Of a stretch of DNA of 64,000 nucleotides, positions 11,216 to 60,354 are shown piece after piece (position 1 is the stretch's first letter; every line of letters starts with the position of its first letter). The notes beneath the pieces were generated by a model that was not told the DNA's origin, did no database searches, and saw only the letters and a list, made by a program, of their open reading frames with translations. A program made the position numbers and the translations under genes. The stretch covers positions 1 through 64,000 of the IMG/VR virus record IMGVR_UViG_3300030329_004647. One strand, written 5' to 3'.

Positions 11216-12781
11216 ATGTCAATTATATTAGAAAACAAAAATAAGAATTCAATTTTTTGGGACACAGTAAAAGATTTAAATGTTAATCTTAAATTTGTGG
11301 GCACTTTTGGATTTGGCATAACTGGACTGTATGGTATTGTACAAGATTTATTATTTAGAACCTTCCCAACACTTACCGAACAAGAAATAATACTCATTTT
11401 TTTAGCTTCTCTTACTTATTTTAGTTCTCATTTAATTGATAATGTTTCAGAATTAAGAAACAAAATTAAAGATAAAAAATTAGAAAAGTATGTTAATAAA
11501 ACCACAGAGGTTTTAAAAAGTTTAGAAAATGTAGGAATACAAGTTGCGAAATCAGCTGGATTTACCATAGGTTCTATGATGGAGTTAGTTGGATATGTGT
11601 TTTTATTGATTCCATTTTTAGACACGGTAACCCAAATAATACAAAATAATAGTTTTGATTTATTTACTTTAGGAACTTATTTAAAGTCTATACTTGCCTC
11701 TATAGGTATTTTTTATGTTAAAAATTTATTTAATTCTTTAGTTTTAAAATTAGCTGGGGGTAAAAAAGATGAGTTAAAAGAAAATTTTATTAAAGATATG
11801 TCACTACTAGAACATGATACGAAAAATGTCTTTAATAGGTGGAAGAAAGAAACAGATAGGGGAGGTGTAGCCCAACGGATTAATGAGGATGACCTTTACT
11901 ATTTTTTAATAGAAGACCCAAGTGAAGATAAGAGATATGTTGATTGGATGGCTAATCAGTTTGTAAGCGGGTATTGGTTAAACGTAAATAGAGAATACCT
12001 AGTTAGATTAATTAAATTATTTCATCACAATTTAGAAAGATTAACCCCTAAAAATGTAAGTAACCTAAAGGATACCTCAATCCCTGAAAAATATTTGTTA
12101 AAAATAATAGACAATCCAGATAATATAGAAAGTTACGCGGGATACCCTCACCTTGAAAAGGTATTATCTCTACTTGCAAAAAGTCAATTTAATTTATCCG
12201 AAGTTGAATTAGGGTTGGGTGAGTTTGAAGAAATGGTAGGTGAATCTAAAAAAGCTGATTTAATTATAGAATCACAAGGACTAGATATTGATGAAGCTTA
12301 CGATGTTTATTTTAATAGTCCAATCAAACACATAAAAGAACACAAAGACCCCAGAATAAACCAACCACTTCAAATAGGTGACGTAGTGGAACTAATATAT
12401 ATGGATGACCCATATAACCCTATATCACCACTAACAAGAGGTGTGGTTATGGGATTTGAACCTACTCCTGGTGAAGATAAAATTCTAGTTCGTTGGATTA
12501 TGGACGCAGAAAATGAAGAGTTTAGAAATTTTCCTATGATACCCGAGGCAGATGTTTGGAGAAAAATAGAACCATCTACGGAGTCTATAACAGAAGGGAA
12601 TCTATATGAATATGATAATGGTATGTTTGGAATTAAGTTTAAAATTTCACCCAATAAAAAGAAAGTATATATTAAGGAGGGTAAATACTACGGTGTTAAA
12701 GCTACTAAAAAACAATTAAAAGAAGACCTATTCCAAAAAATGATACATTTGTTATTAAAAAAAGAAAAATTGGTCTACTAA
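11216..12781 (+). CDS. modular protein: TM-rich module + DPS/KYxxW module + SH3-like module
   Basis: hydrophobic N-terminal third; EDPSEDKRYVDWM resembles 17058/18848; IKE|HKDPRINQPLQIGD resembles repeats in 41862. Confidence 0.75.
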   Translation: MSIILENKNKNSIFWDTVKDLNVNLKFVGTFGFGITGLYGIVQDLLFRTFPTLTEQEIILIFLASLTYFSSHLIDNVSELRNKIKDKKLEKYVNKTTEVLKSLENVGIQVAKSAGFTIGSMMELVGYVFLLIPFLDTVTQIIQNNSFDLFTLGTYLKSILASIGIFYVKNLFNSLVLKLAGGKKDELKENFIKDMSLLEHDTKNVFNRWKKETDRGGVAQRINEDDLYYFLIEDPSEDKRYVDWMANQFVSGYWLNVNREYLVRLIKLFHHNLERLTPKNVSNLKDTSIPEKYLLKIIDNPDNIESYAGYPHLEKVLSLLAKSQFNLSEVELGLGEFEEMVGESKKADLIIESQGLDIDEAYDVYFNSPIKHIKEHKDPRINQPLQIGDVVELIYMDDPYNPISPLTRGVVMGFEPTPGEDKILVRWIMDAENEEFRNFPMIPEADVWRKIEPSTESITEGNLYEYDNGMFGIKFKISPNKKKVYIKEGKYYGVKATKKQLKEDLFQKMIHLLLKKEKLVY

Positions 12782-12966
12782 ATTTCGTCGGACACCATTC
12801 TTTGTTTGTATATCGCTTTTTGTTTCATTTCTCTAAGTCTGTCTGATTTTTTGGTAAAAGCCTTTTTATCTCTTAGAGTTTTTAATTGTTTTGTCAATTT
12901 TACTTTTCTTCTAAGTGTTTTTAAGGCTCTGTTTAAATTATTTTTTTCTATTTTAACTATTAACAT
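12778..12966 (-). CDS. rpsU: ribosomal protein bS21 homologue
   Basis: MLIVKIEKNNLNRALKTLRRKV...FTKKSDRLREMKQKAIY fits the Bacteroidota bS21 pattern; 62 aa, very basic. Confidence 0.85.
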   Translation of the reverse strand: MLIVKIEKNNLNRALKTLRRKVKLTKQLKTLRDKKAFTKKSDRLREMKQKAIYKQRMVSDEI

Positions 12967-12990
12967 TTAATTCATTTTAATTTATTAGTA

Positions 12991-13662
12991 CTATTTTTTC
13001 TTTTTACTACCAATAACTTCATCAATCAAACCGTATTTAAGAGATTCATCCGCTGTCATCCAATTGTCTCTTTCTGCATCTTTCATTACTTGTTCCGCGT
13101 CTTTATCACAGTACTCTCCGAGTAACTCAAATAATGTTTTATTTATTTTTTCCCACTCCATAAAATCAATTCTAGCGTCTTGTATGTTTCCTATAGAACC
13201 ACCACTAGATTGGTGTATCATACTTCTAGAAAACCTAAGTGAAGCTCTTTTACCCTTTGCTCCCGCTCCTAAAAGTACAGCACCCATACTAGCTGCCATA
13301 CCTGTATTGATAGTAGCAATATCACATTTAACATAATTCATGACATCTATAATACTTAGTCCGGATTTTACAGAACCGCCTGGAGAGTCTATATGCATTA
13401 CAATATCACTTTTACTATCTAGATTGTCTAGAAACATAAGTTGTGCTTGTACTATTGTAGACATCCCATCATTAATTGGTCCTGCACACCAGATAATACG
13501 TTCCATCATTAATCGAGAGAATATATCCATTTGGGTTACTCTCATTTCTCTCTCCTCTAGGATAAAAGGAGTCATACTACTTTCATAGTCGTGTAACGCT
13601 AAAGAAGACACTCCTAAGTGTTTCGTTGCGTAACTTTTAAATTCATTTTTTACATTCAACAT
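12991..13662 (-). CDS. clpP: ATP-dependent Clp protease proteolytic subunit
   Basis: MDIFSRLMMERII, HIDSPGGSV, GMAASMG (catalytic Ser), MIHQ (His), ERDNWMTA, YGLIDEV. Confidence 0.96.
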   Translation of the reverse strand: MLNVKNEFKSYATKHLGVSSLALHDYESSMTPFILEEREMRVTQMDIFSRLMMERIIWCAGPINDGMSTIVQAQLMFLDNLDSKSDIVMHIDSPGGSVKSGLSIIDVMNYVKCDIATINTGMAASMGAVLLGAGAKGKRASLRFSRSMIHQSSGGSIGNIQDARIDFMEWEKINKTLFELLGEYCDKDAEQVMKDAERDNWMTADESLKYGLIDEVIGSKKKK

Positions 13663-13675
13663 AATATTATTTTTT

Positions 13676-15450: not shown

Positions 15451-16545
15451 CTAACTGGTTCTCCAGTTTAGTTCATCAATAAATATTTCGTTGAAGTGAT
15501 TTTCCACTTCAGTGTTGTCAGGGTATTCAGAAACTCGTGGACACAGAAGTCCTCCATTATAGTCATTCTCTTCCATTGCCGTAACTAAAGTACCAAACCA
15601 ACTACCTTCTTCTAAATAAGGGTCAGCATAACTCTCCCATTGTTTAATAACATCCCAGAATTTATCGGTAATATCTATTTTATATTTCCAATTAGGCACC
15701 TCAACCAATTGACCTTCTTTATTTCTTCTACGACTACTCCCAGACTGAACACTTTCTCCCTGAGGTAAAATTTCTCTAACTGCATCAACATAGGTGTTAT
15801 AATATTCCCCAAGAGAAATATCATTATAAGCCGTATCAAACGTATCCCGTATAGCTCCTTCCACTTCTTCTAGCTCTTCGGTGTTTCCTATTAATACTGA
15901 CATATTATATCTGTCTTTAGCTACACTCATTATTCTATCTGGTGTGAGAATAAAACCACTCTTTCTATCACCTAATTTGTCAGCATCAACCCAAGAACCA
16001 AACTCTTCTCTAAAAGAAGAAACTTCCATATTACTAAAGTTTTCTAGTAAAAAATCTACAAGTTTTTGATAGTTTTCCTCACTCATTATGGAGTCTTCAT
16101 TAACATTTCCTACTATGTCTTCTAAACTCATACTGCCATAATGAGGTTCCCAATCTAAACCTTCTTCAGAAAATATTTGTTCAGCTAGGTCCCTACAAGG
16201 TATGTCTTGTCTATAATAACCATCTGTACTAAACAACTGTGACAAATCATTCTCATTATCTAGATATAAAAAATATTTATCACCCTCTTGTTTAACATCC
16301 CCAATATCCCTTGAAACCAAATCAAAAGCTAACTTTTCATAAGGCTTATAACTACTATCAACTAAGGGAGGGACTATTTTTAAATAATTGTCTTCGTCAA
16401 ATAAATCTACAAGTTGGTCTAGTTGGTCATTCTTCTTATAATAATCAAAAATAGAATATATATCATGACCAAATAGTTTTTCAGCATCCTCTATCGTGTC
16501 AAGTTGCTCGTAGACTAAATTCTTTATGATGTTTACCAGTTTCAT
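15451..16545 (-). CDS. acidic protein with N-terminal leader MKLVNIIKNLVYE|Q
   Basis: Asp/Glu-rich ORF; TATTTATA 4 nt before ATG. Confidence 0.75.
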   Translation of the reverse strand: MKLVNIIKNLVYEQLDTIEDAEKLFGHDIYSIFDYYKKNDQLDQLVDLFDEDNYLKIVPPLVDSSYKPYEKLAFDLVSRDIGDVKQEGDKYFLYLDNENDLSQLFSTDGYYRQDIPCRDLAEQIFSEEGLDWEPHYGSMSLEDIVGNVNEDSIMSEENYQKLVDFLLENFSNMEVSSFREEFGSWVDADKLGDRKSGFILTPDRIMSVAKDRYNMSVLIGNTEELEEVEGAIRDTFDTAYNDISLGEYYNTYVDAVREILPQGESVQSGSSRRRNKEGQLVEVPNWKYKIDITDKFWDVIKQWESYADPYLEEGSWFGTLVTAMEENDYNGGLLCPRVSEYPDNTEVENHFNEIFIDELNWRTS

Positions 16546-16549
16546 ATCC

Positions 16550-16557
16550 TATAAATA
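16550..16557 (-). promoter_or_regulatory. TATTTATA motif (putative late promoter)
   Basis: + strand TATAAATA; 4 nt from ATG 16545. Confidence 0.55.
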
Positions 16558-17036: not shown

Positions 17037-17044
17037 TATTTATT
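17037..17044 (+). promoter_or_regulatory. TATTTATT motif (putative late promoter)
   Basis: upstream of ATG 17058. Confidence 0.45.
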
Positions 17045-17057: not shown

Positions 17058-18845
17058 ATGAATCTATTTGAAAATATAAAAATTTTATTAAAAGAAGATA
17101 GAGTTAGTGATGTGCTAAAAAAATATAGTAAAAACCCTAACCTATCCCAAGACCTTTTTGATGTTATAGTACAAGGTAGTAGTGAAATCGCGGGTAACCA
17201 AAAATACTTAGATTGGATTGTTAGTAGATGGTTAAAATCTAGAGCAGATAATCCAGAAACAGTTACATCATCTAAAGAAAGTGCACAAGAGGTTATCGAC
17301 GCGGTAAGAACCTTTGATAAGGTAAGAAATACTTTAGACATTAAGAACTTATACGATTATAAAACCATCACCCAATTATTTGATACTTTAAGAGCGGTAC
17401 AAAAAAAAGCAAGAAGAAATGTAAGTAGTAGAGAGGACGCTACTAAAGTTTTTGAAAATGACCAGTTTACTATTATGGTGCCAGAAAGTAAAGAAGCTTC
17501 GTGTTATTATGGTGCTGGTACAAAATGGTGTGTCGCGTCTACCGATACTGATTCTCATTATAACAATTATAAACAGTCTGGAGAACTTTACTACATAATT
17601 GATAAAACAAAACCTACATCGGACCCGACATACAAGGTAGCTCTTAATAAAAAATTAACAGGGGAGGAAGATTATTGGAATGCTATAGATAAAATGATAA
17701 CAGATACATCACTTATTGATTCTATAGTAAATAACGAAGATTTAATGAAGACAATAAGAGTACATTTTGAAGGTATTCATGGAGAAAGAGCAGCTCAGGC
17801 AGAAAGAGAAAGAAAACAAAGAGAACAAGAAAGAGCAACACAAGATGCAGAAAGAAGACAACGAGAAAGACAAAGGAGAGCACGTTTAAACGCTGAAGCA
17901 CAGACTAGAAGAGAAAATGGTGAATGGGAAGAATATGATTTAGCTCATGCATTGATGACATATTTAATTGAAAATGGTGATTGGGAAGGAAGTAGTAAAG
18001 AAGAAATACAAGACCAAATAGACACTCTAAGAGATGAAATGGAAAATGACCCAGAAGTTATAAATGACCCAGATGGTCCAAGAGCTCAGGAGTACGGGGA
18101 AGATTTAAATAATTTAGAAGAAGAATTAGAAGAGGCAGAAGATGTTTATGAGTTAATCCCAGAACCTTATGAGACTGAGGACTATGCAGGATTTGAATAT
18201 GGTGGAGCTGAATGGTTAGTGGCGACAGAGGAGGGTGCTGATGAATATGCATATGAAAGAGTAGAAAGTTTAATAGACGATATAGGATATGAAGGATTCA
18301 ATGAAGGATTTGTAGACAATCATATAGATGGTGACCAAATGGCAAATTATTATGAGGAGTGGTTTAGAGATGAGGTAGAAGAAGAACCAGACAGTTATTT
18401 AGATAATGATATCTATGGTGATGATATGGAGTTAACAAGTGAAGCAAAAGAAGAGATTGAAAAAATAAAAGATGTAATAGGGGAGTTTAATGAGGAACTA
18501 GAAGAAACCGATGACCCAATCATGAGGGAGGAACTAGAAGATAAAATACAAGATTTAGAAAGTGAGATAGAAGACCTTGAAGACGATGAAGATTCTTATG
18601 AATTTACAGACGAGGCAAAAGAAAGATATGTAGAGGGTAGAATGGACGATATAAGATATGACCCTGCTGCTTTTATGAGAGACTATGGGATGGAAAGAGA
18701 AATCGAAAACTTTATAGACCAAGAAAGTTTTATTGAGGACGTAATAAACTCTGATGGTAGAGGTCATACTATTTCTTCCTATGACGGTGAAGAAGATGAG
18801 GTAGAGTATGAAGGAGAAACATATTACATATATAGAATGAATTAA
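17058..18845 (+). CDS. leader-bearing protein with ASCYYGAGTKWC domain and hyperacidic C-terminus
   Basis: MNLFENIKILLKE|D; KVFEND..EASCYYGAGTKWC; charged helix linker; D/E-rich tail. Confidence 0.8.
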   Translation: MNLFENIKILLKEDRVSDVLKKYSKNPNLSQDLFDVIVQGSSEIAGNQKYLDWIVSRWLKSRADNPETVTSSKESAQEVIDAVRTFDKVRNTLDIKNLYDYKTITQLFDTLRAVQKKARRNVSSREDATKVFENDQFTIMVPESKEASCYYGAGTKWCVASTDTDSHYNNYKQSGELYYIIDKTKPTSDPTYKVALNKKLTGEEDYWNAIDKMITDTSLIDSIVNNEDLMKTIRVHFEGIHGERAAQAERERKQREQERATQDAERRQRERQRRARLNAEAQTRRENGEWEEYDLAHALMTYLIENGDWEGSSKEEIQDQIDTLRDEMENDPEVINDPDGPRAQEYGEDLNNLEEELEEAEDVYELIPEPYETEDYAGFEYGGAEWLVATEEGADEYAYERVESLIDDIGYEGFNEGFVDNHIDGDQMANYYEEWFRDEVEEEPDSYLDNDIYGDDMELTSEAKEEIEKIKDVIGEFNEELEETDDPIMREELEDKIQDLESEIEDLEDDEDSYEFTDEAKERYVEGRMDDIRYDPAAFMRDYGMEREIENFIDQESFIEDVINSDGRGHTISSYDGEEDEVEYEGETYYIYRMN

Positions 18846-18847: not shown

Positions 18848-20386
18848 ATGAAGGGATTAGATAAAATATTATTAGAAGGTAGGGTTGAAGATGCTAAGAA
18901 CTTACTGAACAAAACTTATGACGACATGGATTACGTCGAAGATATTGTTAGTGACTTTGTAGATGGAGACCCATCAGGTAATAACAAATACTTAATGTGG
19001 ATGGCAAAAGCTGTACAGGAGGAATATATGAATATAACCGATATTATAGAGTTGGTTACAGACTATCATAAACTTTTACCCAAAATCACCAATGCTTTAG
19101 CGATAAAAGTATTCGGTGCAGAGGCAGACTCAAACGCGATAGTTTCACCCAAAAGTATAGACTCCTACAAAACAGTAGAAGATTTATATAAAATAGTTGA
19201 TGCCGCGAAACAACTAGAAAGTAGAAAAGAAGTAGCGACCCAAGCAAAATCAGGAGCTAATAAAATATATGAAGATGAAAGATGGTTAGTGGTCAGACCA
19301 GACACTAGAGATGCATCCTGTTATTATGGTGCAGGCACAAAATGGTGTACCGCTATGAAAAATGCTGAACATTTTGATAACTACAATAAAAAAGGAAGAC
19401 TTTATTATTTGATTGATAAAAGTAGAGACCTAGGAAGATATTATAAAGTAGCTTTATACAAAGAGTTCGGTGCGGGGGGAAGAGATGAGTATTGGAATGT
19501 GGGTGAATGGTATGATGAATTAGATGATAGACTAACTAGTGATATGTTAGAGGTAATAGTAGCTTTACTACCTGAAAAGTTAGGTTCCCGTATTCTGCAA
19601 GACTTTAGAAAAGAGGAGGAAGAAAACGTACTATCAAGACCAACAGCACAAGAATTTGGTAAGAAATTTATAACATGGGTTGGAAATAAATACCCAGATG
19701 GGGACTTAATAACGAGTTTAAGTGGTCCATGGGCATTACAAGCATTTGTTCATGAAGGTGAGGAACCTTATATCTCACTGTCCGCAAGAAAATATGAGGG
19801 ATATGTTAATGTGGCTATTTTTGATGATGCTAATCCAGATGAAATAGTTGTAGATTTAAATGTTGAAGCATCTGCACATGAAAGAGAGAATTACTTTGAA
19901 ATGTCCGAGAGCGTAAGATACGGTACCCCTGAATTTGAGAGTAAATTTTGGAGATTCGACCTCAATGACGAGTTTACCGAAAGGAATTTTGAAACGTTCT
20001 ATACTCAGTTAATATATTGGTGGATTAAAAATAAAATTTTAAATAGTGATAAGGTAATAGAAAGAGTGGATTTAGATGAAGTATACTGGCAACAAGGAGG
20101 ACATAGTGGACGAAGTTTAAGATTTCATTATCCACCTCGAAAAGGAACAATGACACAATTATTTACAGATTATGTAATTAATAATCCAGGAAGAACAAGA
20201 CAACAATTTTATCAAGACGTTCTCAAAAAAAATCATACACCAGGTCATAATACTACATTTTTTGGTGGAATAATATCTTCAGGTATTGTAAGAGGAGAAA
20301 GAGGTCCTGGGAGAGGAAGAGGAATGCAATTCTACAAAGGACCTAACTACGATGCGTGGACTCAAGGGAAATTAAAAAGAGTATAG
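18848..20386 (+). CDS. paralogue of 17058 with different C-terminus
   Basis: MKGLDKILLE|G; DPSGNNKYLMW; DASCYYGAGTKWC..YYLIDK..YKVAL. Confidence 0.8.
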   Translation: MKGLDKILLEGRVEDAKNLLNKTYDDMDYVEDIVSDFVDGDPSGNNKYLMWMAKAVQEEYMNITDIIELVTDYHKLLPKITNALAIKVFGAEADSNAIVSPKSIDSYKTVEDLYKIVDAAKQLESRKEVATQAKSGANKIYEDERWLVVRPDTRDASCYYGAGTKWCTAMKNAEHFDNYNKKGRLYYLIDKSRDLGRYYKVALYKEFGAGGRDEYWNVGEWYDELDDRLTSDMLEVIVALLPEKLGSRILQDFRKEEEENVLSRPTAQEFGKKFITWVGNKYPDGDLITSLSGPWALQAFVHEGEEPYISLSARKYEGYVNVAIFDDANPDEIVVDLNVEASAHERENYFEMSESVRYGTPEFESKFWRFDLNDEFTERNFETFYTQLIYWWIKNKILNSDKVIERVDLDEVYWQQGGHSGRSLRFHYPPRKGTMTQLFTDYVINNPGRTRQQFYQDVLKKNHTPGHNTTFFGGIISSGIVRGERGPGRGRGMQFYKGPNYDAWTQGKLKRV

Positions 20387-26045: not shown

Positions 26046-29000
26046 ATGCGAAATTTTCTATTAATTATATTATGTTTTATATCGTTTGGAGTTGTAGCAC
26101 AGAACGATTCGTGGTTAAACCTACAAATCCAATTTGATAACTATCCTGAAGAATTAGACTGGAAATTATTTCAATTAGACACTTTAGCACCGAACAATAT
26201 TCTTGTCGCAGAGGGCGGACCTTACTACTCAACACCAAACCAACATTTACTTAATGTTTTTATACCTAACTTACATTCTAATGAAACTTACATATTAGAA
26301 GTCCATGACTCATTTGGGGACGGGTTAAGTTGGCCTAATAATGGGTATGTTTATTTGTCTAATATTTGTACGGACACCATATCATATGTGGAGGGAGACT
26401 TTGGTCCTTTTTTTACAGACACATTAACTGTTTCACCATGTAATTCCCCACCATTAGGTTGTCCAGATACATTAGCACTTAACTACGATTCTCTTGCGCA
26501 ATACACAGACATGAGTGTATGTACTTATCCTCCTTGTACTTCAGGTTTAGACACTCTATATGTTGAACCTATATGTGATAATGGGGTTTCAAAATTATAC
26601 TGGCAGTGGTCAGACCAAACAGATACAAATCCTAATTGTGGGATTATCGGTTATTATAGAGGAACAGACCTAAATAACCTCCCTTTTTATCCTTGGCCAA
26701 GTAACTGGCCCCAAGGAGGATTAACAACAACTATTAACCAAACATCACAAGGACAAATGCATTATTTTTATGCGATGTTAGGTGATTCTACTTTAACTGA
26801 CACTCTATCCATAATGCCTATACAATGCATATTAGGATGTACCGACCCTACAGCGATGAATTATAATCCATGGGCAAATGAAGATGACGGTAACTGTCAA
26901 AGCGCACAAGGAAGTTGTAATTACGGAGAAACATGTGTGAGAGTAATAGTAACACCAGATTCTTATGGAGAAGAAACTTATTGGTCACTAACCGATACTA
27001 TTACAGGAACCGTATTAGGTTCTGTGAATCCTGGTTTCTACTCAACACCAGGAGTTCCAGTAACCACTAATGTATGTGCACCTGAAAATTCAGTATTAGA
27101 ATTTACATTAAACGACCAATATGGAGACGGTATGTGTGGAACTTGTTGGGGTGGAATAGATGGTTCGGTGTTAGTAGAAGCTTGTGGTGATACTATAGCA
27201 CACATTGGACCTCCTACACCTATGGATTTTGGAAGTGATACAACGTTTGTTGCGGTTCCAGCACCAGTGTGTACAACAACAGGACCTACAGTAGGTTGTA
27301 TGGACCCAGGTTATGTCGAATACCTCCCAACAGCAACACAACAAAATCCAGGAGATTGTGTAACACCCGTTCAGTTGGGTTGTGTTGACCCAATGGCTTT
27401 TAATTATGACTCCACAGCCAATCAACAACTTATAACACCTAGCTGTACTTATACGTTAAGGTTATTAGATGGTGCTGGTGATGGATGGTTCGGTTCTTGG
27501 ATAGGAATCACACAAGGAGATTCTATTATTGGTGATTTTACTATGACACAAGGAGACACTCTAGACATTCCAATAGTATTAGACGCAATAAAACCAGCAA
27601 AAATATATTTCTTTACACTAGGAAATTCAGTATCAACAGCTAGTCAATGTGGTGTTCAACTAATAAACCCAATGGGACAAGTTACATTTTACGCTGGTTC
27701 TAATCCATGGACAGACCCTATTATTCCATTTCCTTTTATATACACCACAATTCAAGATTGTGGAAACAGTTGTGTACCTACAATTCCAGGATGTATGGAT
27801 TCTACCGCATACAATTATAATCCAGGAGCAAATGTACCAGATACAGTGTTTCCGTGTTTTTACAATCCAGGGTGTATAAGTCCTGCTTATTTAGAATACC
27901 ATACTTATTTAGATTCTGTTGGTGTTGCTCCAGATTTTCTGGACCCATTTTCTTGTCAGAACCTTGCAATTTTTGGTTGTATGGACTCAACTCAATTTAA
28001 TTACGACCAATATGCTACTGTTAATTGGACTTCCGCGACCGATTCATCAGACCCGTGTGTCCCTATGATATATGGTTGTACAGACGCCACAGCTTTAAAT
28101 TATGACCCATTGGCTAATACAGAAAATTATACGTGTATACTACCAATATATGGGTGTACGGATTCAACAGCTTTTAATTTTAACCCATTAGCGAATACAA
28201 ATAATGGAACTTGTATTGCTGTAATAGAAGGGTGTACTGACCCTACAGCTATGAATTATAATCCTAACGCTAATACAGATGATTTTAGTTGTATAGCTTA
28301 CATTTACGGTTGTACCGACTCCACGATGTGGAATTATAATCCATTAGCAAACACAGATAACGGAACCTGTGAACCTTTTGTTTATGGTTGTACGGATGTT
28401 ATAGCAGCTAACTTTGACCCATTAGCAAACACAAATAACAATACATGTTATTATAATCCAGGTTGTACCGACCCACTTTATGTAGAATTTTATAATCAAG
28501 GATTTACCGCTGACTTTGACGATGGTAGTTGTTTGACCCTAGTTGTATATGGTTGTACCGATAACACTATGTTTAATTATGACCCAACCGCAAATGTAGA
28601 TAATGGTAGTTGTGAACCTTTTGTGTATGGGTGTATAGACTCTACTATGTTTAACTATGACCCATTAGCTAACACGGATAATGGTACGTGTGTACCTTTT
28701 ATTTACGGGTGTATGGACGCCACAATGTTTAATTACGACCCATTAGCCAATACAAATCAAGTGAGTGAAACAGATATCTCCAACCCATGTATACCAATTA
28801 TATATGGATGTACCGACTCAACAGCATTTAATTATGACCCTTATGCAAATACAGATAACGGAACTTGTGAAGCAGTGGTATACGGATGTACAGATGAATA
28901 CGATTTTCCAGCATACCTAGATTCAACTTATATAAATTATTTACCAGGATTTTCAACGGTTACCACTTACAATGTTGATGTCACAGCAAATACAGACGAC

Positions 29001-30016: not shown

Positions 30017-30020
30017 ATTT

Positions 30021-30407
30021 ATGACAACTACAAAAACACAAGGATTTTTACAAAAAATTGACCCACAAATGTGGTTAACTTTAATAGGCTTTGTATTCAC
30101 CCTAGGACTTATTTATGGAGAGTTTCAACAAATGAAAAATCAAATACAAATATTTGAAGAAAAACAAAAACTTTTTGATGAAGATTTTGAGAATGAAACC
30201 AAAATGGTACTTGAAAAATTTGAAACATTAGAAGAAAAACTACAACTTGAAATTGAAACGGTAGAACAAAGATTAGATAAAAAGATTAAAACAATAAATA
30301 CTCTAGAAGATAAAGTATTTGATATTACAAAAGAAATAGATGTTGAGTTTAAGAAAATAGAAATGCAAATAAAAAATTTAGGAGGCCATGATATAACTAA
30401 AGAATAA
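30021..30407 (+). CDS. membrane-anchored coiled-coil protein
   Basis: TM WLTLIGFVFTLGLIY then heptads. Confidence 0.7.
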   Translation: MTTTKTQGFLQKIDPQMWLTLIGFVFTLGLIYGEFQQMKNQIQIFEEKQKLFDEDFENETKMVLEKFETLEEKLQLEIETVEQRLDKKIKTINTLEDKVFDITKEIDVEFKKIEMQIKNLGGHDITKE

Positions 30408-41848: not shown

Positions 41849-41856
41849 TATTTATT
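41849..41856 (+). promoter_or_regulatory. TATTTATT motif (putative late promoter)
   Basis: 5 nt before ATG 41862. Confidence 0.45.
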
Positions 41857-41861
41857 TGTAT

Positions 41862-44800: not shown

Positions 44801-45815
44801 ACACTCAATCATATTTCCAGTGATTACAAGACAAGACCTTAAAAATTTATTATATGACGAAAAGTCAGAAGAAATGGTTTATAAGGTAATGGGTATATTT
44901 AAAGACTTCAGACCAGGTACTGAAAAATATATGCATCATAAAATAGCTGATGTAATCGCTGATAATCCACAAGAGTTTATTAAAAGGTTACAAGATTTAT
45001 TTCCAGAAAAGAAAATCACAAAAGAAACTTTTTCCAGAATTATAGAAAATATAGATACTACAGAAATAAAATATGCTATAGACCAACAATATAGAACTGA
45101 ACCTGATTTAAAATCTGATATTATACAATCAATACTTGGAGACGAAGAAACAACTGAGGATACTTTTTATTTAAACCCACAAGGTGTAGAATTAAACGTA
45201 CCACCAATCAAAATAGCACAAAAGGTTAGTGATATTAATGATTATGGTGAGATTAATTTTGAAATGCAGGGTGGAAACGGTATCGCTTATTTTACAGATA
45301 AAGACTTAGTAATAAAACTTACAACTGATGAATCTGAATATCACACAGCGACTAAACTACTAGGAACAGAAAATAAACATATTGCTAATGTGTTAGAAAG
45401 TGCAAAAATTAACACTTCACATATAAAAGGTGACCTTTTTATGATAGTAACAGAAGCTTTACATATGACCAAAGAGATGGAAGAAATATGGCACAAATGC
45501 TGTTGTTCAGAAACAGACCCAATTTATATAGATTATACTCAAGAACCAGCTAGACCTATATCACCAGTATCAGAACATGCAATATGTCAACCTATATATG
45601 ATAATATTATATCAATAATTAGTGATTTAACGTCACATGGAATAACTTGGAGTGATATTGGGATAGATAATCTAGGTATTAAAAATGGAAAACTAGCCTT
45701 AATAGACTTAGGAGATAGTCAAGGTGGGTCACTTAAAGGTAAAATACTAACATTAGAAAGGAGAAATGATTTAATACAAAGAGAACTTTTATATGAAGAT
45801 GTATTCCCTAACTAA
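41862..45815 (+). CDS. polyprotein 1: Zn ribbon, 3 SH3-like repeats, acidic domain, nuclease-like and protein-kinase-like domains
   Basis: modules delimited by LNE|H, LTE|Q, MTE|H, ISE|Q, LNE|Q, IIE|N; kinase motifs GGNGIAY, VIK, DIGIDN, IDLG. Confidence 0.8.
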   Translation: MKSKTTYYTDDWKEKLVDDFYTEYYPKPRLEQSIFKYLDNLYYISEDEIFGTIYRKSDDYFMGKTQITDDLQNLFGLTLPNLLKIGPGEDDYIEPARNPIPRRVLNNWMKSKRNTERLQKESIVKDSIVCDNCGWNWKIKDGGDDLYICHKCNHNNTPLNEHKESKINPQLMIGDEITVVDVDESFGTLHTPERYKDYVVIGRRHRQPENWEGPDADTSYYVIEPLSGYSDKETLGRMLSGGGRKREEQLHPTDKWMLRKGFLRGEHLTEQKSLKNNLLNVELEEGDKILVVSRKETPAGYREPLPDHDVELFTTYVVIEKRYSGHKAKHPYHYFLLPEEQYEIFINDPYDDSVDKSVKSLFPWIHDWILDNEDIMTEHKESKINPELEVDDIIRIIDVDGEHDRKPEKFKLYRVAYKGNKPIGHGYSWETEPRIWYDIVPTDLDYDTVRTFDSRGTPMYHSKSLYPGDTWIKMDEVISEQSADSPGDNISDDDEEYVDNTPFTKKEILILNQLHKKLTKDELHSLVIDTPGKGSSDYYQHQAKFWEVMKLFGMDYKNDAPYQTRISQYAKWALDNWTPEGDYGKIGNPLKVPLKWYNVSREETGTQVEYKSGEAEVLGFDYDNAEERANNEFWEWGGEMEPFDYGDYEAHDSEITGIDFVRLDEAKRIVKVLNEQDESGLERQIIQAETEDFQELMYEVLRRVRQIPLDKTVSPRRIKEILSDDGVSFDLYQGADLNEEIHREYNRVRFYEYSQQLLKAAHSKGVRGHYFEGLLAGLFNGEVVSPMEGEMTDPKEDVLINGINYSAKLVRAQDKKWGTSSLLGGFKKAIIQRLVDRDIEVPDELLKRKLEVKTLNELVVLFPEGDPDRESFQVRHMELFLKDSSVDRKYKEITMNYAFTSKSEEEIGIELHWIFGLIWGTNETFEGEELPTTNLKYYLMDTPSLIDGILDGDIHFTKGRNIREIRISEKSMIDSNGASEHSIIFPVITRQDLKNLLYDEKSEEMVYKVMGIFKDFRPGTEKYMHHKIADVIADNPQEFIKRLQDLFPEKKITKETFSRIIENIDTTEIKYAIDQQYRTEPDLKSDIIQSILGDEETTEDTFYLNPQGVELNVPPIKIAQKVSDINDYGEINFEMQGGNGIAYFTDKDLVIKLTTDESEYHTATKLLGTENKHIANVLESAKINTSHIKGDLFMIVTEALHMTKEMEEIWHKCCCSETDPIYIDYTQEPARPISPVSEHAICQPIYDNIISIISDLTSHGITWSDIGIDNLGIKNGKLALIDLGDSQGGSLKGKILTLERRNDLIQRELLYEDVFPN

Positions 45816-45820
45816 GTATT

Positions 45821-45828
45821 TATTTATA
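45821..45828 (+). promoter_or_regulatory. TATTTATA motif (putative late promoter)
   Basis: tandem TATTTATTTATA before ATG 45839. Confidence 0.5.
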
Positions 45829-45838
45829 TATCAAATAT

Positions 45839-48800
45839 ATGGCCAATACTACATTACATAAAAACAAAATATCTAGAGAAGACCTATTAAGCTTCTACAA
45901 TACCCCAATACCACAGATAGGGGACAGAATACAAATTTTAGAAACCACTAACGTTGTTGAATCAGGTGAGGTTTTTAATGTTAAAGGTGTACACAGAACA
46001 TCCCAAGGTGTCTTTATAAAATTACAAGAAATTAAAGATAGGTTACCTTTATATTTACATGATGAAGAGACGGTAGAAAATACAACTAAAATTCGTATAT
46101 TAAATCCAAAAAATTTCAACAGCCCTCCACAGTCTTTACTAGAAAAAGGTGATTTTATAATGGTAGAAAATACCCCTTCACCTTTATATGTACTTAAACA
46201 AGACAACCATATTGTAGAAACATTAAGTTTACATCCACTAGGTTTGGATATTAAGAAGATAAATTTAAATGAAAGAAAACATAAATTGTTAAAAGAAAAT
46301 GAGGAAAAGACAACTAAATCTAAAATTTATGACAACCCTGAAGTAAAGGTTGATGACAAAGTACAAATTTTACATGTTCACCATCCTAATAGTTTTAATA
46401 AAAAGTATATTGGTGAAACAGGTATAGTAAAAAGAATTAGTCAGAATGAAAGTGAAGTTCACATAGCGGTAGATTTTGGAGAAGATGATTATAGAAGAAT
46501 AGGTAGTGATGTTGTATACCCTATGTTTAAGATAAAAGGAAAGGTACTAGGTGATTTATACCTACGTGACGGTTCCCCTGAACAAGTTTGGGTAGATAGG
46601 GATTTAGTTAGAATAGTACCAGAACCCATCGTTGAACAAAAAGAAAAAGAAGTAAGTCCTGACCTCCAACTAGGAGATAGAATAATGACTTGGGACATAA
46701 CACCAGACGATACACCACCAGGAGGTCTACGTGCTGAAGATGACTGGGAACCACCCAGTACTTTCATAGCTACAGTAATATCGGTATGTGAAGATTGTTA
46801 TAACCCAAAATATGAAAATGGAATAAAGTATGTGGTAAGGATTGATGATACTGGTGAAGAGGTCGGTCTATATGGGGGTGAAATAGTAGAGGACCAGATG
46901 TCAACTAAATTTTCTACAGAATATACCCCAATAACTTATGAAGGTAGAGATAAGTGGATAAAATTACCTAAGTTAGATATTACAGAAGAATCAGATATAT
47001 TTGGACAAGGATTAATGGACCCTATTGAACCTGAGGAGTTTGAGGGTACGGATAAAGATTGGGAAGAGTTAATTAGTGGTATAGAAGAACCAGCAGATGA
47101 ACCTGAATATGAATATGAAGGAGGTAAAACCGACCCAGAAAAAGGGTTTGTTGCCCCATCTAAAGAAGTTACAGATAATATATGTAAAGTTAAAGGATTT
47201 TGTGAAGCTCAAGGACCTATTACATTTGGTCAACTAAAAGAATTAGTTGAAGAAGCAACATCCAAAAGAATCCAAGCAGATATGGGAAGAGGAGCATTCA
47301 AGACTCTATGGAGAATTGTTCCATTCTTTGTCCCTCAAATACTATTACCAGCTATCGGTGTTACAATAACAAGAGCCATCAACAAATTAGTTACTCCAGC
47401 TTTAAAAGATACAAGAGGGTATAAAGAATGGTGGGGAAAAGTTGTATTAAAAGCTATGGATATTGCAGAAGGAGATTACATCCCTGACCTTGCTATGGGT
47501 GATGACCCTATAAGTAAAGTATTCTTTATTTCTGATGGTTTACTACAAATGATTAAAGATAAATACAAACTTAAATTTGCGAGATATGTTGCAGATGTTG
47601 CAGCATCCAAACCAGATGATGAACCAGTTCCAGATTGGTTCGTGGATAATTTACTAAGAGATTACTTAAATCAAAAATTCTTATTAGACCCACCATTACC
47701 CATAAGACAATCAACGAATGATTTAGAAGGAATAGAATTGGAGGAAGATTTAAGAAATTGGGGATATAAAGATGGTAAAATAGGACCACTTAAAGAACAG
47801 ACAGAAGTAGAAGTTGTGGATGATAATATAGGGGGTTTAGATAAGGCAGGTGGTTATGTAGAAAATAGAAAATTTACACCCAAAGAATGTAAAATATTAA
47901 AACTACTATCTAATAGATTTGAGTTTGATGAGTTGCAGAAATTAGTAAATGTAGATTCACATGCATTATCTGGTGAATTCCAGAATAAATGGGGAGACAC
48001 CATGAAATTAATTGGAGAACCTCTTGGTTCAAATGAAACATGGGGTAAATCACTTAGATGGGCATCTTGGATTATTGATAATTACGACTATGTGAGTAGT
48101 ACAGGTGATGGGTTTTGTGATATAGAGAAACCCTTAATAAGATATCCATCTATGTACGAAGTACGGGGAGATGATTCAGGATGGGAAAGAATATATAGAA
48201 GTGGTTATATTGAGGTTCCTGCTTTTGATGAGGATGATGCTTACGATAAAGCTGACAACCATTGGTTTGATTACGAACCAGAGATGGAAACCTCTGATTA
48301 TGGTGATTATGAATCCGATGATGATTTAGAATTAGCGGAACCAGAACACATTAAGACTTTAAAAGAACAACAACTACCATTTAATTCAGACAATAAAAAT
48401 ATAGAAAGAGACCATCCTAAAGGTGAACCTGATTGGTCTATTAGAAGAGGTAGACAACATTATGCTATGAATGTTAAGGATACTAAAAGTGAACCAGTAA
48501 CAGCACTTAATAATTATCTAGTTAAAAACTCACCATTTAACTTTTTAGGTTTTGATTATTATCTAACCGCAGTTCCAGGTAGAATGCCAAACCAAGCTAA
48601 TGTAGATATATTTGTACCTATGTTGGATACAGGATATAATGCTGATAAATTATGGACTACAAGATTTTCACCAGTGGTTAATTTAGATATACATGATGAT
48701 GAGGGTCCATACTTAGAATCTACAATTGAATTTCTCCACCAAATTAGAGCAGATGAAAAATGGCCAGAATATTATATGTATGATGAGGTTAGAGATAAAT

Positions 48801-56415: not shown

Positions 56416-57417
56416 ATGAGACAATCAAAAATACTACAAATTATACGGGAAGAAATAGACCACCAAGAAAACGGACTTATTTTTGAGGGAGTAAATTCTT
56501 ATACCCCTACAAAGGGATATAGGAATAACCAACTTATAGAAGTTTATGATAGTAAGGGTAAACAACTTATTAATGAAGGAATGATTGATACTGTACAAAG
56601 TGTTTTAGATTATGCGGGATTTATTCCTGGTATTGGAGACCTTTTAGATGGGGTAAACGCTTTAATTTATATGATAAGAAAAAAGTATTTTTTAGGTGTA
56701 ACTTCTTTAGTTGCGGTTATTCCAGCTGTAGGAAGTGTGATAGCAGCACCATTTAAAGCAGCACACAAATTATTAGGTAAGGCAGCGAATAAATTAGGGA
56801 GTATTTTAGGTAAAATGGTTTCTAATGGTAAGAGTGCAGCTTCAGAATTGATAAAATTGTTACAAAGTGGTGGAACCAAACTTAAAGGGGTGACTGATAA
56901 AATTTATAAAGCTATTTCTAAAAATGTATCTAAAATAAACTCATTCTTAGATAAAGTCATACCAACACTAAATAATAAAATAAAAGATTATTCATGGGGT
57001 TATTTTGCATTACCAAATGCATTTGTTAAATCAGGAAACGCTATCATTAAACAAATGAAACAATTTTTTACACAATTAGGTAAACCAGCGTCCTATCAAG
57101 TTAGTAAAAAAGTAGCAAAGAGTGAGGTAAAGAAAGAACTTAAACCAGAAGAAAAAAAGACTAATTATAAAAACTATATAGCAAAATTAAGTAAAAAATA
57201 CAATGTACTCCGATATGGTAAAGAAAATGATTGGGGACAAAATAGATATGCGTTTTATAATAAAGATTGGCATTTTATTTGTCCAGATGGTTCTACGGGA
57301 AAAGCTTGTACCACTAGTAAAACCAAAGAGTTTACTCATGGTATTGTAAAACTCGCTGACGATAATAAAGCTAAGATAGCTCTAAAAAATTATATGGACG
57401 CTAAAAAAACAGCTTAA
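56416..57417 (+). CDS. leader-bearing protein with pre-toxin TG-like domain
   Basis: INE|GMIDTVQSVLDYAGFIPGIGDLLDGVNALIY...LVAVIPAVG; basic C-terminus. Confidence 0.7.
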   Translation: MRQSKILQIIREEIDHQENGLIFEGVNSYTPTKGYRNNQLIEVYDSKGKQLINEGMIDTVQSVLDYAGFIPGIGDLLDGVNALIYMIRKKYFLGVTSLVAVIPAVGSVIAAPFKAAHKLLGKAANKLGSILGKMVSNGKSAASELIKLLQSGGTKLKGVTDKIYKAISKNVSKINSFLDKVIPTLNNKIKDYSWGYFALPNAFVKSGNAIIKQMKQFFTQLGKPASYQVSKKVAKSEVKKELKPEEKKTNYKNYIAKLSKKYNVLRYGKENDWGQNRYAFYNKDWHFICPDGSTGKACTTSKTKEFTHGIVKLADDNKAKIALKNYMDAKKTA

Positions 57418-58512
57418 ATGAAAGATATAATTAAAAAAATATTAAGAGAACAAATTTCTACTGAATTAGAACAAGACCTTAATGCTTTTCATCCAGATTT
57501 ATTTGAATTAGAAGAAGGTAAAAAGAAGAAGAAAAAAAAGAAAAAAGCTAAGAGAGACGCTTGTTATCATAAAGTTAAAAGTAGATATAAGGTTTGGCCT
57601 TCAGCTTATGCTTCAGGAGCTCTTGTTAAATGTAGAAAGGTTGGAGCAAAAAATTGGGGTAATAGTACAAAAGAAGGGGTTAAGTTAGATGAAGGAATGT
57701 ATGGTATGTCAGAACCATTAGATTATGTTGTAGTAGATATGAGAAATTTAAGACCACTCATGATGAACTATGGAGATGGTCAATATTATGAAAAATGGCA
57801 AACAGAATTAGACGCTCAAAAATCAGCAGACGACTTAAATAGAGCTTACCAAAAAACATATGGTGCGGTAGAAGGACCCCATGTTGTTATGTATAAATCT
57901 GATTACTTTACTGAAAAAAGAAAAGAAGATATGATGGAGGGTAAGAAGAGAAAGTTAACCAAAAAACCTAGTTCAGAAACAAGTTTAAGAGATTGGTTTG
58001 GTAGAAAAGGTGCTAAAGGAAGTACTGGAGGTTGGGTAGATTGTAACGCACCAGATGGGAAAGGTGGTTATAAATCTTGTGGAAGAAAAGAAGGTGAAAG
58101 TAGAAAAAAATACCCAGCATGTAGACCTACACCAGCTGCATGTAAAAGTAAAGGAAAAGGAAAAAAGTGGGGTAAAAAGAGTAAAAATGAATCTATAACA
58201 GAACAATATGGTAATTTTGTTAGATGGGGTGAGTTAATAACCGAGGCAGAGTATAAAGGTAGAAAAGTAAAACTTAATAAACCAACTAGAGGTGATGTTA
58301 AGAAGTTTAAGGTTTATGTTAAAAACGATAAAGGTAATGTAGTTAAAGTTAACTTTGGTCATGGAGGTACTTCGGCAAAAAAGAGAGGAGAAAAAACAAT
58401 GAGAATTAAAAAAAGTAATCCTGAAAGAAGGAAAGCTTTTAGAGCGAGACATAATTGTGACAACCCAGGACCAAAATGGAAAGCTAGATATTGGTCATGT
58501 AAAGCTTGGTAA
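57418..58512 (+). CDS. leader-bearing fusion of small basic Cys-containing modules
   Basis: MKDIIKKILRE|Q; WPSAYASGALVKC; GGWVDC..KYPACRP; EAEYKGRKVKLNKP..RARHNC..RYWSCKAW. Confidence 0.75.
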   Translation: MKDIIKKILREQISTELEQDLNAFHPDLFELEEGKKKKKKKKKAKRDACYHKVKSRYKVWPSAYASGALVKCRKVGAKNWGNSTKEGVKLDEGMYGMSEPLDYVVVDMRNLRPLMMNYGDGQYYEKWQTELDAQKSADDLNRAYQKTYGAVEGPHVVMYKSDYFTEKRKEDMMEGKKRKLTKKPSSETSLRDWFGRKGAKGSTGGWVDCNAPDGKGGYKSCGRKEGESRKKYPACRPTPAACKSKGKGKKWGKKSKNESITEQYGNFVRWGELITEAEYKGRKVKLNKPTRGDVKKFKVYVKNDKGNVVKVNFGHGGTSAKKRGEKTMRIKKSNPERRKAFRARHNCDNPGPKWKARYWSCKAW

Positions 58513-58514
58513 CT

Positions 58515-59108
58515 ATGAAACTCCTAGATGTGTTATCGGAACAAATAGAAAGTAATTCTAATCAAGTAGAAAAAAGACTTAGAACACTATTCAGTGCAAT
58601 GCAGGACATCAAAGGAATAGACAACGTCGTGGGGTGTATATCATCAGAAAAATCTAGAGAAAATTGTATGGGTCGTCAGGGGTATATTGTAACCCAAACT
58701 GAGGTTTTGTCATTATTAAGATTATTTGGATATAATGCTTTGGATAAGATGAGATTTGACCAATTTGACATGTTTTATTGGTTAGCTACTTGTTTTATAG
58801 CGAACGGTGGTTACGCAAGGACTTTTAGTCAAGGACCTCTAGAGGCAGTTAATTTAGAAATAAATGTGAGAGAAATGCAAGCTGAATATGATGAAGAACG
58901 TATAGAAACAAGAGAGGGATGGGGTGATTTATATGATATGAGTGATGATGAGGATGCTAAACAATATTATTTAGATAATTTTGAGAGTTTAATGACGGAT
59001 AATGAACACCTAGATGATGATTGGGGTGATATAATAGATGTAAGAAACCCACAGGTAGTTGCACATAGAATAATAAAACTCAACCCTGAATGGATAGGAC
59101 TAAAATGA
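58515..59108 (+). CDS. leader-bearing acidic-domain protein (start moved to MKLLDVLSE|Q)
   Basis: LLRLFG...acidic tail resembles the SDTLKLYG family. Confidence 0.7.
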   Translation: MKLLDVLSEQIESNSNQVEKRLRTLFSAMQDIKGIDNVVGCISSEKSRENCMGRQGYIVTQTEVLSLLRLFGYNALDKMRFDQFDMFYWLATCFIANGGYARTFSQGPLEAVNLEINVREMQAEYDEERIETREGWGDLYDMSDDEDAKQYYLDNFESLMTDNEHLDDDWGDIIDVRNPQVVAHRIIKLNPEWIGLK

Positions 59109-59821
59109 AAGATTTAATTAAAAAAATATTAAAAGAAGAATTGTTAACTGAATCTGCGTTTACACAAGAAATTGCTGTAGACCTATGGAAAAATGTTCTT
59201 GCGTATCCACAAAATAGAACTAAAAAAACTTATGATTACTTAGATTATGTTGATGGAGAAACAGCATTTGGTGCTTTACACTGGACTACCAGTGGATTTC
59301 CACAACTCTATGAGATTATGGGTAATACTATAACTAAACATTATTTTGGTAAAACTGTAGAAGAAATGATAGAGTTTAGTAAGAGTGTAAATGGTGAAGA
59401 ATTAGAGTATGAATGGTGGGAAGACGGTATGAACGACTTTATAAATGGACCTTACAACGAATCCGTCCAAAATCAAGCAATCCATGATAAATTCAGTCAA
59501 AAATTTGCTAGGAGTAAATATGGTGGTGTAATAAATAAATGGACAACACTAAGAGAATTTGCTATAGGAATGTCTTTAATTAATTCTGCTCCGGCGTGTT
59601 TTTTAAGAGGAAAACAATATGGGTGGGACGCTGAAGAAATGATGAGAGATTATTGTAAAGGTACTGGAGAGAAAAGTAATATTCCATCTTCTGAAGAATC
59701 CGGCTGTTATAAAACAAGGGGGTGTAGAAGTAGATGTGAAAACATCAATAAATTTTATCCAGCGCCTAGTAAAAGTGGTTATGTCTGGTCTGACGAAGAA
59801 CATGATAAGTATTGTTCATGA
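59105..59821 (+). CDS. leader-bearing protein, possible lysozyme-like fold
   Basis: MKDLIKKILKE|E; DGETAFGALHWT motif; Cys-rich C-terminus. Confidence 0.6.
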   Translation: MKDLIKKILKEELLTESAFTQEIAVDLWKNVLAYPQNRTKKTYDYLDYVDGETAFGALHWTTSGFPQLYEIMGNTITKHYFGKTVEEMIEFSKSVNGEELEYEWWEDGMNDFINGPYNESVQNQAIHDKFSQKFARSKYGGVINKWTTLREFAIGMSLINSAPACFLRGKQYGWDAEEMMRDYCKGTGEKSNIPSSEESGCYKTRGCRSRCENINKFYPAPSKSGYVWSDEEHDKYCS

Positions 59822-60354
59822 GACGGTTAATCCAAAGAATACTCCTAGAAGAAACAACCTCTAAAGTTTTATTAGTTTTCGGTGGTATAAATCAAGCTAC
59901 TCCAGAATGGATGGGGAATCAAATTCCTAGTAGAATTAAAAATCAGTACGATAAAATAATCCTCAAAAGTTATAGAAGTAGAGATTTGTTAGAATCAATA
60001 GACTCTCTTAAAGAAATGAAAAACACCAATATTAGTGTAGTAGGTTTTTCACAAGGAGGTCTCAATACCTACAGATTAGCCAATAGTGGTGTAAAGTTAG
60101 ACTTTCTAGGTTTAATAGACCCATCAGTTAAAAGTGACTGGTCATTAAAAGGATTTCCTTCCGGTCGAAATTCTGTGTTATTCTACAATAATAAAAACTG
60201 GGGTAAACAGTACTATGACAAATACATTGTGTGGAGAAATGAATTAGCGGAAGAGATGAGAAGTAGTGGTATGGAAGTAGTAGAAGAAGATTTAAATCCA
60301 CATATAAATGACCATATGTTATTCCCTAGAGAATTTTTTAATAGGTTTATGTAG
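59818..60354 (+). CDS. leader-bearing alpha/beta hydrolase
   Basis: MRRLIQRILLE|E; nucleophile elbow VVGFSQGG; LIDPS; C-terminal His. Confidence 0.75.
   Translation: MRRLIQRILLEETTSKVLLVFGGINQATPEWMGNQIPSRIKNQYDKIILKSYRSRDLLESIDSLKEMKNTNISVVGFSQGGLNTYRLANSGVKLDFLGLIDPSVKSDWSLKGFPSGRNSVLFYNNKNWGKQYYDKYIVWRNELAEEMRSSGMEVVEEDLNPHINDHMLFPREFFNRFM

Follow-up and report, generated by a model that had tools for sequence, protein, structure and literature searches.

A short N-terminal leader on unrelated genes of an uncultured marine phage is a candidate capsid-targeting propeptide

Introduction

Why would phage proteins that have little else in common begin with nearly the same eleven residues? The question is raised by a 64,000-nucleotide stretch of viral DNA (the window), which corresponds, with identical sequence, to positions 1–64,000 of the 232,028-bp IMG/VR contig IMGVR_UViG_3300030329_004647. 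A first-pass annotation of the window listed at least 14 open reading frames (ORFs) that start with a related leader, and proposed that this leader directs diverse proteins into the phage head and is removed there by a prohead protease. Here we ask which of these ORFs carry the leader, where else it is found, and whether the genome encodes a protease and a capsid that would fit the proposal.

Among the proteins that phage heads carry and deliver along with the DNA are factors that act as a first line of counter-defence, the classic case being IPI* of phage T4. The capsid-targeting principle of T4 is also in use as a protein-packaging tool. We know of no means of recognising the head-carried proteins of uncultured phages from their sequences; a short, almost invariant, virus-specific tag, together with a recognisable protease, would give a computational handle on them. 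In T4, the protease gp21 cleaves after L/I-X-E, and residues 1–10 of internal protein (IP) IPIII are enough for packaging (PMC9026906). Within the T4 capsid-targeting sequence (CTS), the residues important for targeting are 4 and 7, and those important for processing are 8 and 10; an Asp at position 10 blocks processing but leaves targeting intact (PMC9026906). We consider it probable, at roughly 0.6, that the leader described here is a capsid-targeting propeptide of the T4 kind, in a system that has a consensus of its own, falls into three leader classes and serves far more clients than that of T4.

Results

A leader shared by otherwise unrelated proteins

Six ORFs of the window start with the 11-residue consensus M-[KR]-x-[LIR]-I-[KQ]-[KQR]-I-L-[KRL]-E, which we call class T1. 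These robust carriers, at 53088, 53336 (GTG start), 54728, 57418, 59105 and 59818, all lie between 53.1 and 60.4 kb (Table 1). Written as a DNA pattern, the core I-[KQ]-x-I-L-x-E has six matches in the window, compared with 0.13 expected from shuffles, and all six are in frame and 12 nt past the start codon. When 8-mers were scored by residue class, the top score fell on six N-termini and on 0 of 17,548 internal positions. A chance origin of T1 from the AT-richness of the genome is thus ruled out. Paralogy is ruled out as well: when the first 22 residues were removed, an all-against-all BLAST found only 17058 and 18848 to be paralogous (E 7e-24), and the description of the leader ORFs as otherwise dissimilar stands.

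A looser form of the T1 architecture, hh-x(1-2)-hh-x-E, is present in 15451 (minus strand), 56416, 17058 and 18848. Of these, 15451 attains the maximum class score; 56416, 17058 and 18848 reach 6.5, as do about 0.1% of internal positions, and are therefore marginal on the motif alone. The leader of 58515 is weak, with a score that is insignificant on its own. Two ORFs belong to other classes, 56183 to a second class, T2 (MKKIKLTEE..hh.+Vh.E), and 51752 to a third, T3 (hhLSE[QS]EKxRIRGLH); T2 and T3 recur on a dozen flanking genes, one of them directly 3' of the capsid gene. Finally, the leader proposed for 11216 (MSIILE) is not separable from chance, because [LI]xE occurs within residues 3–14 of 46 of the 198 genes of this genome (23%). 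The original list of at least 14 related leaders thus reduces to six clear T1 leaders and four looser ones, with 58515 weak, 56183 and 51752 assigned to T2 and T3, and 11216 unsupported; only about 7–10 of the 14 carry this particular leader. A second [LI]xE directly behind the leader was considered as a general trait and rejected, as only 5–9 of 68 families have one.

The leader was also said to be absent from early metabolic genes, and this was borne out: no T1 leader is found at 1–11 kb of the window or in the mostly enzyme-coding 40 kb to its left.

Conservation of T1 in viral and cellular databases

We searched a degenerate DNA pattern for MKxLIKKILRE in IMG/VR and in prokaryotic genomes, bacterial and archaeal, that total 596 Gb. 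IMG/VR gave 102 matches, all at ORF starts, 0–27 codons past an in-frame stop, against only two in the bacterial and archaeal set. The matching IMG/VR contigs have 26–41% GC and are up to 318 kb long, and many of the matches are preceded by ATATTTATA. The proteins downstream of the matches fall into at least 34 unrelated families, and at least 68 T1 families are counted when unseeded neighbours in the same loci are included. The leader genes are found in tandem arrays. One of the two prokaryotic matches lies on a 63,985-bp contig (L205) filed under the Prochlorococcus single-cell genome AG-409-L21, and a leader-bearing viral contig in IMG/VR (L025) is also 63,985 bp long. Should these prove to be one sequence, Prochlorococcus may be a host of some leader-bearing phages, or a cell to which they adhere.

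The unseeded sample comprises 54 T1-like N-termini, in which I, L, V or M at P3 is given by construction of the search. Their final residue is Glu in 51 of 54 and Asp in none, and the residue before it is Lys or Arg in 48. At nearly every leader position synonymous codons are used at approximately genome frequencies (AAG; CTA, CTG and TTG; AGG and CGA; GAG). Position 3 is free, and replacements among K, R and Q or among I, L and V are tolerated, while replacement of the Glu is not. Because synonymous codons vary, position 3 is free, conservative replacements occur and the Glu is kept, we conclude that selection acts on the peptide.

A literature search returned no paper containing the leader peptide strings and no earlier account of such a leader in marine phages.

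A gp21-type protease and a T4-type head module

The 40 kb to the left of the window encode enzymes, chaperones, a sigma factor and a primase-like gene, and no head genes were found there. By stepping along the genome with exact-protein look-ups, we reached the head module to the right. It has a T4-type order: TerL, Portal_T4, three small ORFs, Peptidase_S77, a 473-aa acidic protein in the scaffold position, and Gp23. A gp21-like prohead protease, whose gene the first-pass annotation had suggested looking for, is therefore present: the Peptidase_S77 (PF03420) gene lies at 17996–18697 of locus L200, and the identical protein is encoded on the window's own contig at 116,602–117,300. In an alignment with T4 gp21, His89, Ser152/153 and Asp178 of this protease are invariant; with PA5oct gp152 added, the His of ELNHP, the Ser of G(I/V)SSRG and the downstream Asp are likewise all invariant. 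L-x-E is invariant at the column of LIE-9 in T4 gp21. In one relative the S77 protease gene is split by an intein with a LAGLIDADG domain (L051, 6705–8450, minus strand; 581 aa vs. ~240).

The capsid protein carries L-I-N-E/A (a slash marks the bond after the Glu) in the column of the known T4 gp23 cleavage site, L-T-E/A. The same column reads L-[IL]-x-E/[AT] in three relatives and L-V-E/N in PA5oct. T1-bearing relatives share the head module, with matches of 2.5e-28 for Peptidase_S77 (L099), 2e-68 for Gp23 and 2e-78 for Portal_T4, and in these relatives T1 genes are interleaved among the protease, scaffold and capsid genes.

The window itself contains a gene, at 12991–13662 on the minus strand, that PHROGs labels 'head maturation protease' (phrog_94). 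Its product matches the cellular CLP_protease family end to end (positions 5–181 of 182, Pfam 5e-60), and it lies on the minus strand with MetK and with genes that are S21-like and endolysin-like, not in a head module. The gene of a ClpP-like prohead protease would be expected within that module, most often beside scaffold or capsid genes or fused to them. We rejected this ClpP as the prohead protease because it is of full-length cellular type, lies outside the head module, has a ClpC partner encoded elsewhere, and a true S77 protease is present. ClpP is part of a larger proteostasis set, which also includes a ClpC-like double-AAA ATPase with a UVR motif, Hsp70/DnaK and DnaJ (at L198 46–2070, L200 2435–4291 and L194 2546–3547). 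The ClpC-like gene adjoins the module of neck, TerL and portal genes, an arrangement also seen in the relative L052.

A promoter-like motif shared with head genes

The sequence TATTTAT(A/T), mostly with A or G before it, occurs 4–25 nt ahead of the ATG of 11216, 15451 (minus strand), 17058, 45839, 51241, 53088 and 54728. The position of leader ORFs behind this motif, or in operons headed by it, was correctly described for 11216, 15451, 17058, 53088 and 54728, and 51241 heads the operon that includes 51752. The motif, as (A/G)TATTTATA, also precedes TerL, the protease and other head genes of this genome; the structural genes behind it are without the leader. Since this candidate late promoter lies only 4–25 nt before start codons, late mRNAs would have very short 5' leaders. 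The phage encodes a sigma-70-like factor with regions r2 and r4 (L195, 546–1352), about 30 kb to the left of the window.

Proteins behind the leader

The leader proteins are strongly acidic or strongly basic (e.g. 57418). The leaders themselves have no hydrophobic stretch and no signal peptide, and the sole hydrophobic helix among the leader proteins is a segment in 56416. The hallmarks of Sec, lipoprotein and type IX secretion system (T9SS) export, either an N-terminal hydrophobic core with 10 or more residues or a sorting domain at the C-terminus, are not those of the leader proteins; genuine signal peptides and a Por_Secre_tail domain are present on other genes of the phage. Among the labels first given to the cargo, the peptidoglycan hydrolase held up, with M23, PG-binding and SLT domains, whereas esterase, PT-TG and OmpA-like had no Pfam support at E<=0.01. 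Tagged proteins in the flanks include a GH24 lysozyme (with a related T2 leader), a VanY-family protein, a PG_binding_1 protein and a soluble PAP2 enzyme (T1). If packaged and injected, such proteins would make up the 'effector arsenal' that was first proposed.

Beyond its leader, 57418 has domains in common with cyanophage 'gp114' and with pelagiphage proteins. Cyanophage S-RIM8 gp114 was considered as a carrier of an internal T1 and rejected, as the alignment covered only the shared DACY..WPSAYASG domain.

Discussion

Relation to known packaging leaders

The closest parallel to T1 is the CTS of T4 IPI, IPII and IPIII, which is likewise a short N-terminal leader that starts with MK, ends in hydrophobic-x-Glu and is common to unrelated proteins. 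The two genomes also have in common an S77 gp21-type protease, a T4-type portal, a scaffold and Gp23, as well as late expression signals. In the T4 record, the N-terminus of IPII and IPIII is MKTYQEFIAE/A and that of gp24 is MAKINELLRE/S. The CTS MKTYQEFIAE has 10 residues, whereas T1, MKxLIKKILRE, is basic and has 11; the gp24 propeptide ends as T1 does (..ILRE/S). The T4 gp23 and gp24 propeptides are on shell proteins, while T1 is on enzymes and orphan proteins. T4 has three IPs; this phage, known from sequence alone, has three leader classes, with at least nine T1 genes and about 15 T2/T3 genes in the ~167 kb of its genome covered. Adjoining gp114 in Synechococcus phage S-RIM8 is a 108-aa ORF (L001, 3606–3932) that starts with MKSYNEFISE, near-identical to the T4 IPII/IPIII tag. 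As a canonical T4-type CTS is separately present in this cyanophage, T1 is a distinct consensus.

In phiKZ, 201phi2-1 and SPN3US, propeptides of inner-body or ejection proteins are cut after Glu by gp175 or gp245, a diverged gp21 homologue (PMC9026906). These are jumbo phages, like the present one, and dozens of head proteins are processed there (PMC9026906). They differ in their motif, S/A/G-x-E, in having long propeptides where T1 is a short tag common to many proteins, and in forming a phage nucleus; neither chimallin nor a virion RNA polymerase was seen in the present phage. PA5oct (Arenbergviridae) resembles it in having T4-like gp20, gp21 and gp23, and its gp205 is homologous to 17058 and 18848 at ~23% identity, but it is without the T1 consensus. 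Its gp205 is a virion protein by electrospray ionization tandem mass spectrometry, with the N-terminus MKLFEVFTLYE/D. Another PA5oct virion protein detected by mass spectrometry, the 73-aa gp150, starts with MKINDIITE/G, resembles T2 and is encoded between the portal and protease genes (L113, 4922–5143). In the text of the PA5oct paper that we consulted, no processing of gp205 or gp150 is reported.

Weighing the packaging reading against its alternatives

Several points weigh against T1 as a packaging propeptide. The residue after the Glu is most often another Glu (31 of the 54 unseeded leaders), which an S77 protease may or may not accept. Ile8 is encoded by ATA in 49 of 54 families (for example at window 54749–54751), against 42% genome-wide (p ~1e-13), and some nucleotide-level constraint at this codon also exists. 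T1 is lineage-restricted, occurring in 8 of the 80 head-module loci of the nearest capsid-protein clade. A tblastn search of 50,697 phage records with 53336, 56416, 59818 and an abundant 69-aa T1 family returned nothing useful, and no cultured relative of T1 proteins was found in it. There is no detectable sequence homology between T1 and the T4 CTS, which have in common only the M, the K and the terminal h-x-E pattern. As for the cargo, the GH24 lysozyme, VanY and PAP2 proteins could equally be lysis or metabolic enzymes, and the Clp/DnaK/DnaJ set could recognise a basic-hydrophobic N-terminal tag.

This last point can be made into a separate account, in which the leader is a tag for the phage's proteostasis system (the ClpC-like ATPase with ClpP, or DnaK/DnaJ) and late proteins are unfolded, held or degraded on schedule. 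Hsp70 binds a hydrophobic core flanked by basic residues, which is the make-up of T1, and the genome has the cellular-type ClpP (5e-60), ClpC-like double-AAA ATPase, Hsp70 and DnaJ that such a tag would serve. Clp genes occur in 7 of the 102 leader-seeded loci and are no commoner near leaders than S77 genes, although loci of 10 kb are too short for this comparison to be telling. A proteostasis tag leaves unexplained why an invariant Glu, never Asp, stands at a fixed distance, why the same motif is found at the conserved site of the capsid protein, and why leader genes lie within head modules; we consider it improbable. We give no more credence to an amphipathic membrane-targeting helix, which would bring late proteins to the inner membrane for lysis or membrane-associated assembly, with no packaging. 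The helical hydrophobic moment of T1 (0.67–0.76) and its net positive charge would suit such a helix, as would the several peptidoglycan enzymes among the tagged proteins (M23/SLT, lysozyme, VanY, PG_binding). A strict terminal Glu on 11 residues would be unusual, however, since acidic and polar residues interchange in membrane helices; very acidic proteins and a DNA-binding-like protein with poly-Lys carry the tag too, and it is essentially missing from cellular genomes.

A further alternative is that the conserved unit is DNA or RNA, either a translation-start enhancer of near-leaderless late mRNAs or a recombination handle by which gene cassettes are shuffled. It could draw on the closeness of the promoter-like motif to the ATG, the ATA bias at Ile8 and the tandem arrays of leader genes. 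Yet the remaining positions vary synonymously at about genome frequencies, position 3 is free, K/R/Q and I/L/V swaps are tolerated while the Glu is kept, and structural genes behind the same promoter do without the leader, so that we hold this to be very improbable. Closer to the packaging reading is the idea that the leader does target proteins to the prohead or virion but stays on, or that its carriers are assembly factors outside the mature particle, and that nothing is injected. All evidence for head association applies equally to it, and a T4 leader with Asp in the last position targets the head unprocessed (PMC9026906). The invariant Glu and the preceding I/L, which fit a protease motif, would be needless for docking alone, and we find such uncleaved docking unlikely. 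Taken together, the rivals account for the amphipathic basic helix, but not for the invariant Glu, the match at the capsid site or the position within head modules.

A capsid-targeting propeptide would account for these. Ending in I-L-(K/R)-E, T1 fits a gp21-type specificity, and the rule of Glu but not Asp is expected from a Glu-specific processing step. Late in infection, the genes behind (A/G)TATTTATA would be expressed along with the head genes; the basic amphipathic leader would dock its cargo onto the acidic scaffolding core as the prohead is built; the gp21-type serine protease (Peptidase_S77, 116.6 kb) would cut after the Glu at (I/L)-(K/R)-E, freeing the mature protein in the head; and the freed protein would be able to exit with the DNA at the next infection. 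The predictions of this model that were tested at sequence level all came true (protease, L/I-x-E motif, capsid site, unrelated cargo, near-confinement to viral sequence and, in relatives, head-module position), while the extent first claimed for the leader shrank to about 7–10 of the 14 ORFs and ClpP is not the head protease. T2 and T3 probably work like T1, as each has an [IL]-x-E within the first 8–22 residues.

A broader possibility, which we put forward tentatively and think less likely than the packaging function itself, is that T1, T2 and T3 are three address tags of widespread uncultured AT-rich marine T4-like and jumbo phages, by which at least 20 different proteins per genome would be loaded into the head, among them cell-wall enzymes, DNA-binding proteins and numerous orphans. 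If true, the tag is a sequence-only marker for the injected proteome of uncultured phages, and the T4 internal-protein system is the small end of a far larger phenomenon; the few hundred loci at hand already yield their 68 or more cargo families. It would also extend the T4 capsid-targeting principle to a second, unrelated leader-scaffold pair, and would account, in a way that can be tested, for some of the orphan genes of marine jumbo phages. That the orphan cargo includes counter-defence factors is plausible.

Gene coordinates and genomic setting

The coordinates of the leader ORFs and of the promoter-like motif are given in Table 1.

Table 1. Leader ORFs and late-promoter-like motifs in the window (positions as in the window; a slash marks the bond directly after the leader)
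Feature	Position	Strand	Remarks
ORF, 521 aa, MSIILE/N, leader unsupported	11216..12781	+	Behind late-promoter-like motif
Variant T1 leader ORF, 364 aa, acidic, MKLVNIIKNLVYE/Q	15451..16545	-	ATATTTATA 4 nt upstream
Looser leader ORF, 595 aa, MNLFENIKILLKE/D	17058..18845	+	Homologous to PA5oct gp205 in its N-terminal domain
Looser leader ORF, 512 aa, MKGLDKILLE/G	18848..20386	+	Paralogue of 17058
T3-class leader ORF, 287 aa, MNNLFTLSEQEKNRIRGLHLTESKDKRLTSVL	51752..52615	+	~30-residue N-terminus also on an 868-aa ORF just 3' of the capsid gene
T1-leader ORF, 83 aa, acidic	53088..53339	+	MKARIKKILRE at 53088-53120; TATTTATT 4 nt upstream
T1-leader ORF, 456 aa, GTG start, net charge -36	53336..54706	+	(M)KNLIKQILKE at 53336-53368; without known domain
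T1-leader ORF, 480 aa	54728..56170	+	MKTLIKKILRE at 54728-54760; then Peptidase_M23 (residues 64-155; Pfam 9e-19), PG_binding_1 (4e-11), SLT (1.6e-13)
T2-class leader ORF, 76 aa, MKKIKLTEETLGRIVKRVIME/Q	56183..56413	+	N-terminus shared with three further genes of the genome
Variant T1 leader ORF, 333 aa, MRQSKILQIIRE/E	56416..57417	+	Basic, net +27; one hydrophobic segment, residues 91-109
T1-leader ORF, 364 aa, net +46, poly-Lys run	57418..58512	+	MKDIIKKILRE at 57418-57450
Weak leader-like ORF, 197 aa, MKLLDVLSE/Q	58515..59108	+	Score 5.5
T1-leader ORF, 238 aa	59105..59821	+	MKDLIKKILKE at 59105-59137, then ELLTE
T1-leader ORF, 178 aa	59818..60354	+	MRRLIQRILLE at 59818-59850
Late-promoter-like TATTTATA	54716..54723	+	Further + copies at 11197-11204, 17037-17044, 45817-45828, 51208-51215, 53076-53083; - copy at 16550-16557

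The window is AT-rich (~31% GC), and its genes are tightly packed and predominantly on the plus strand. No tRNA genes were found in it, and inspection upstream of the fourteen leader ORFs revealed no obvious Shine-Dalgarno sequence. Near-identical assemblies of 279–280 kb are held in Tara Oceans and JGI data, and at its right end the window is overlapped by a Tara scaffold with 99.9% identity. In a megablast search with 41–62 kb of the window, the sole match was 110 bp of two pelagiphages.

The first 6 kb encode UvdE, PPK2, a DNA ligase and a CCA/poly(A) polymerase-like enzyme, and the minus-strand group at 12.8–14.7 kb contains ClpP, MetK and the S21-like gene. Tail-spike or tail-fibre-like proteins are encoded at 20387 and 35344. 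Between them, at 26046–33928, the phage contains host-like outer-membrane genes. One product, of 1123 aa, has a signal peptide and, at its C-terminus, a T9SS sorting domain (Por_Secre_tail, 3e-10); another is a SusC-like TonB-dependent receptor of 801 aa (Plug 1e-23, beta-barrel 2.5e-22). The sorting-domain protein and the SusC-like receptor both point to a Bacteroidota host, probably a marine species.

Three further observations concern other genes. The S21-like gene, at 12778–12966 on the minus strand, is a 62-aa ORF similar to ribosomal protein S21, with homologues in 20 of 80 related head-module loci. At 41856–51202 there are two very large ORFs (1319 and 1787 aa), nearly without detectable domains; the longer has the late-promoter-like motif in front and a P-loop kinase domain (AAA_33, 7e-11) at its end. 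In a separate contig group of 36–41% GC (L014, L016, L022, L023 and about 13 other loci), a conserved 20-codon ORF reads MKELIKKILSESHQNIYFII followed by a stop codon; L032 has a 264-aa version of it, and the short form is possibly a disrupted gene or else an upstream peptide.

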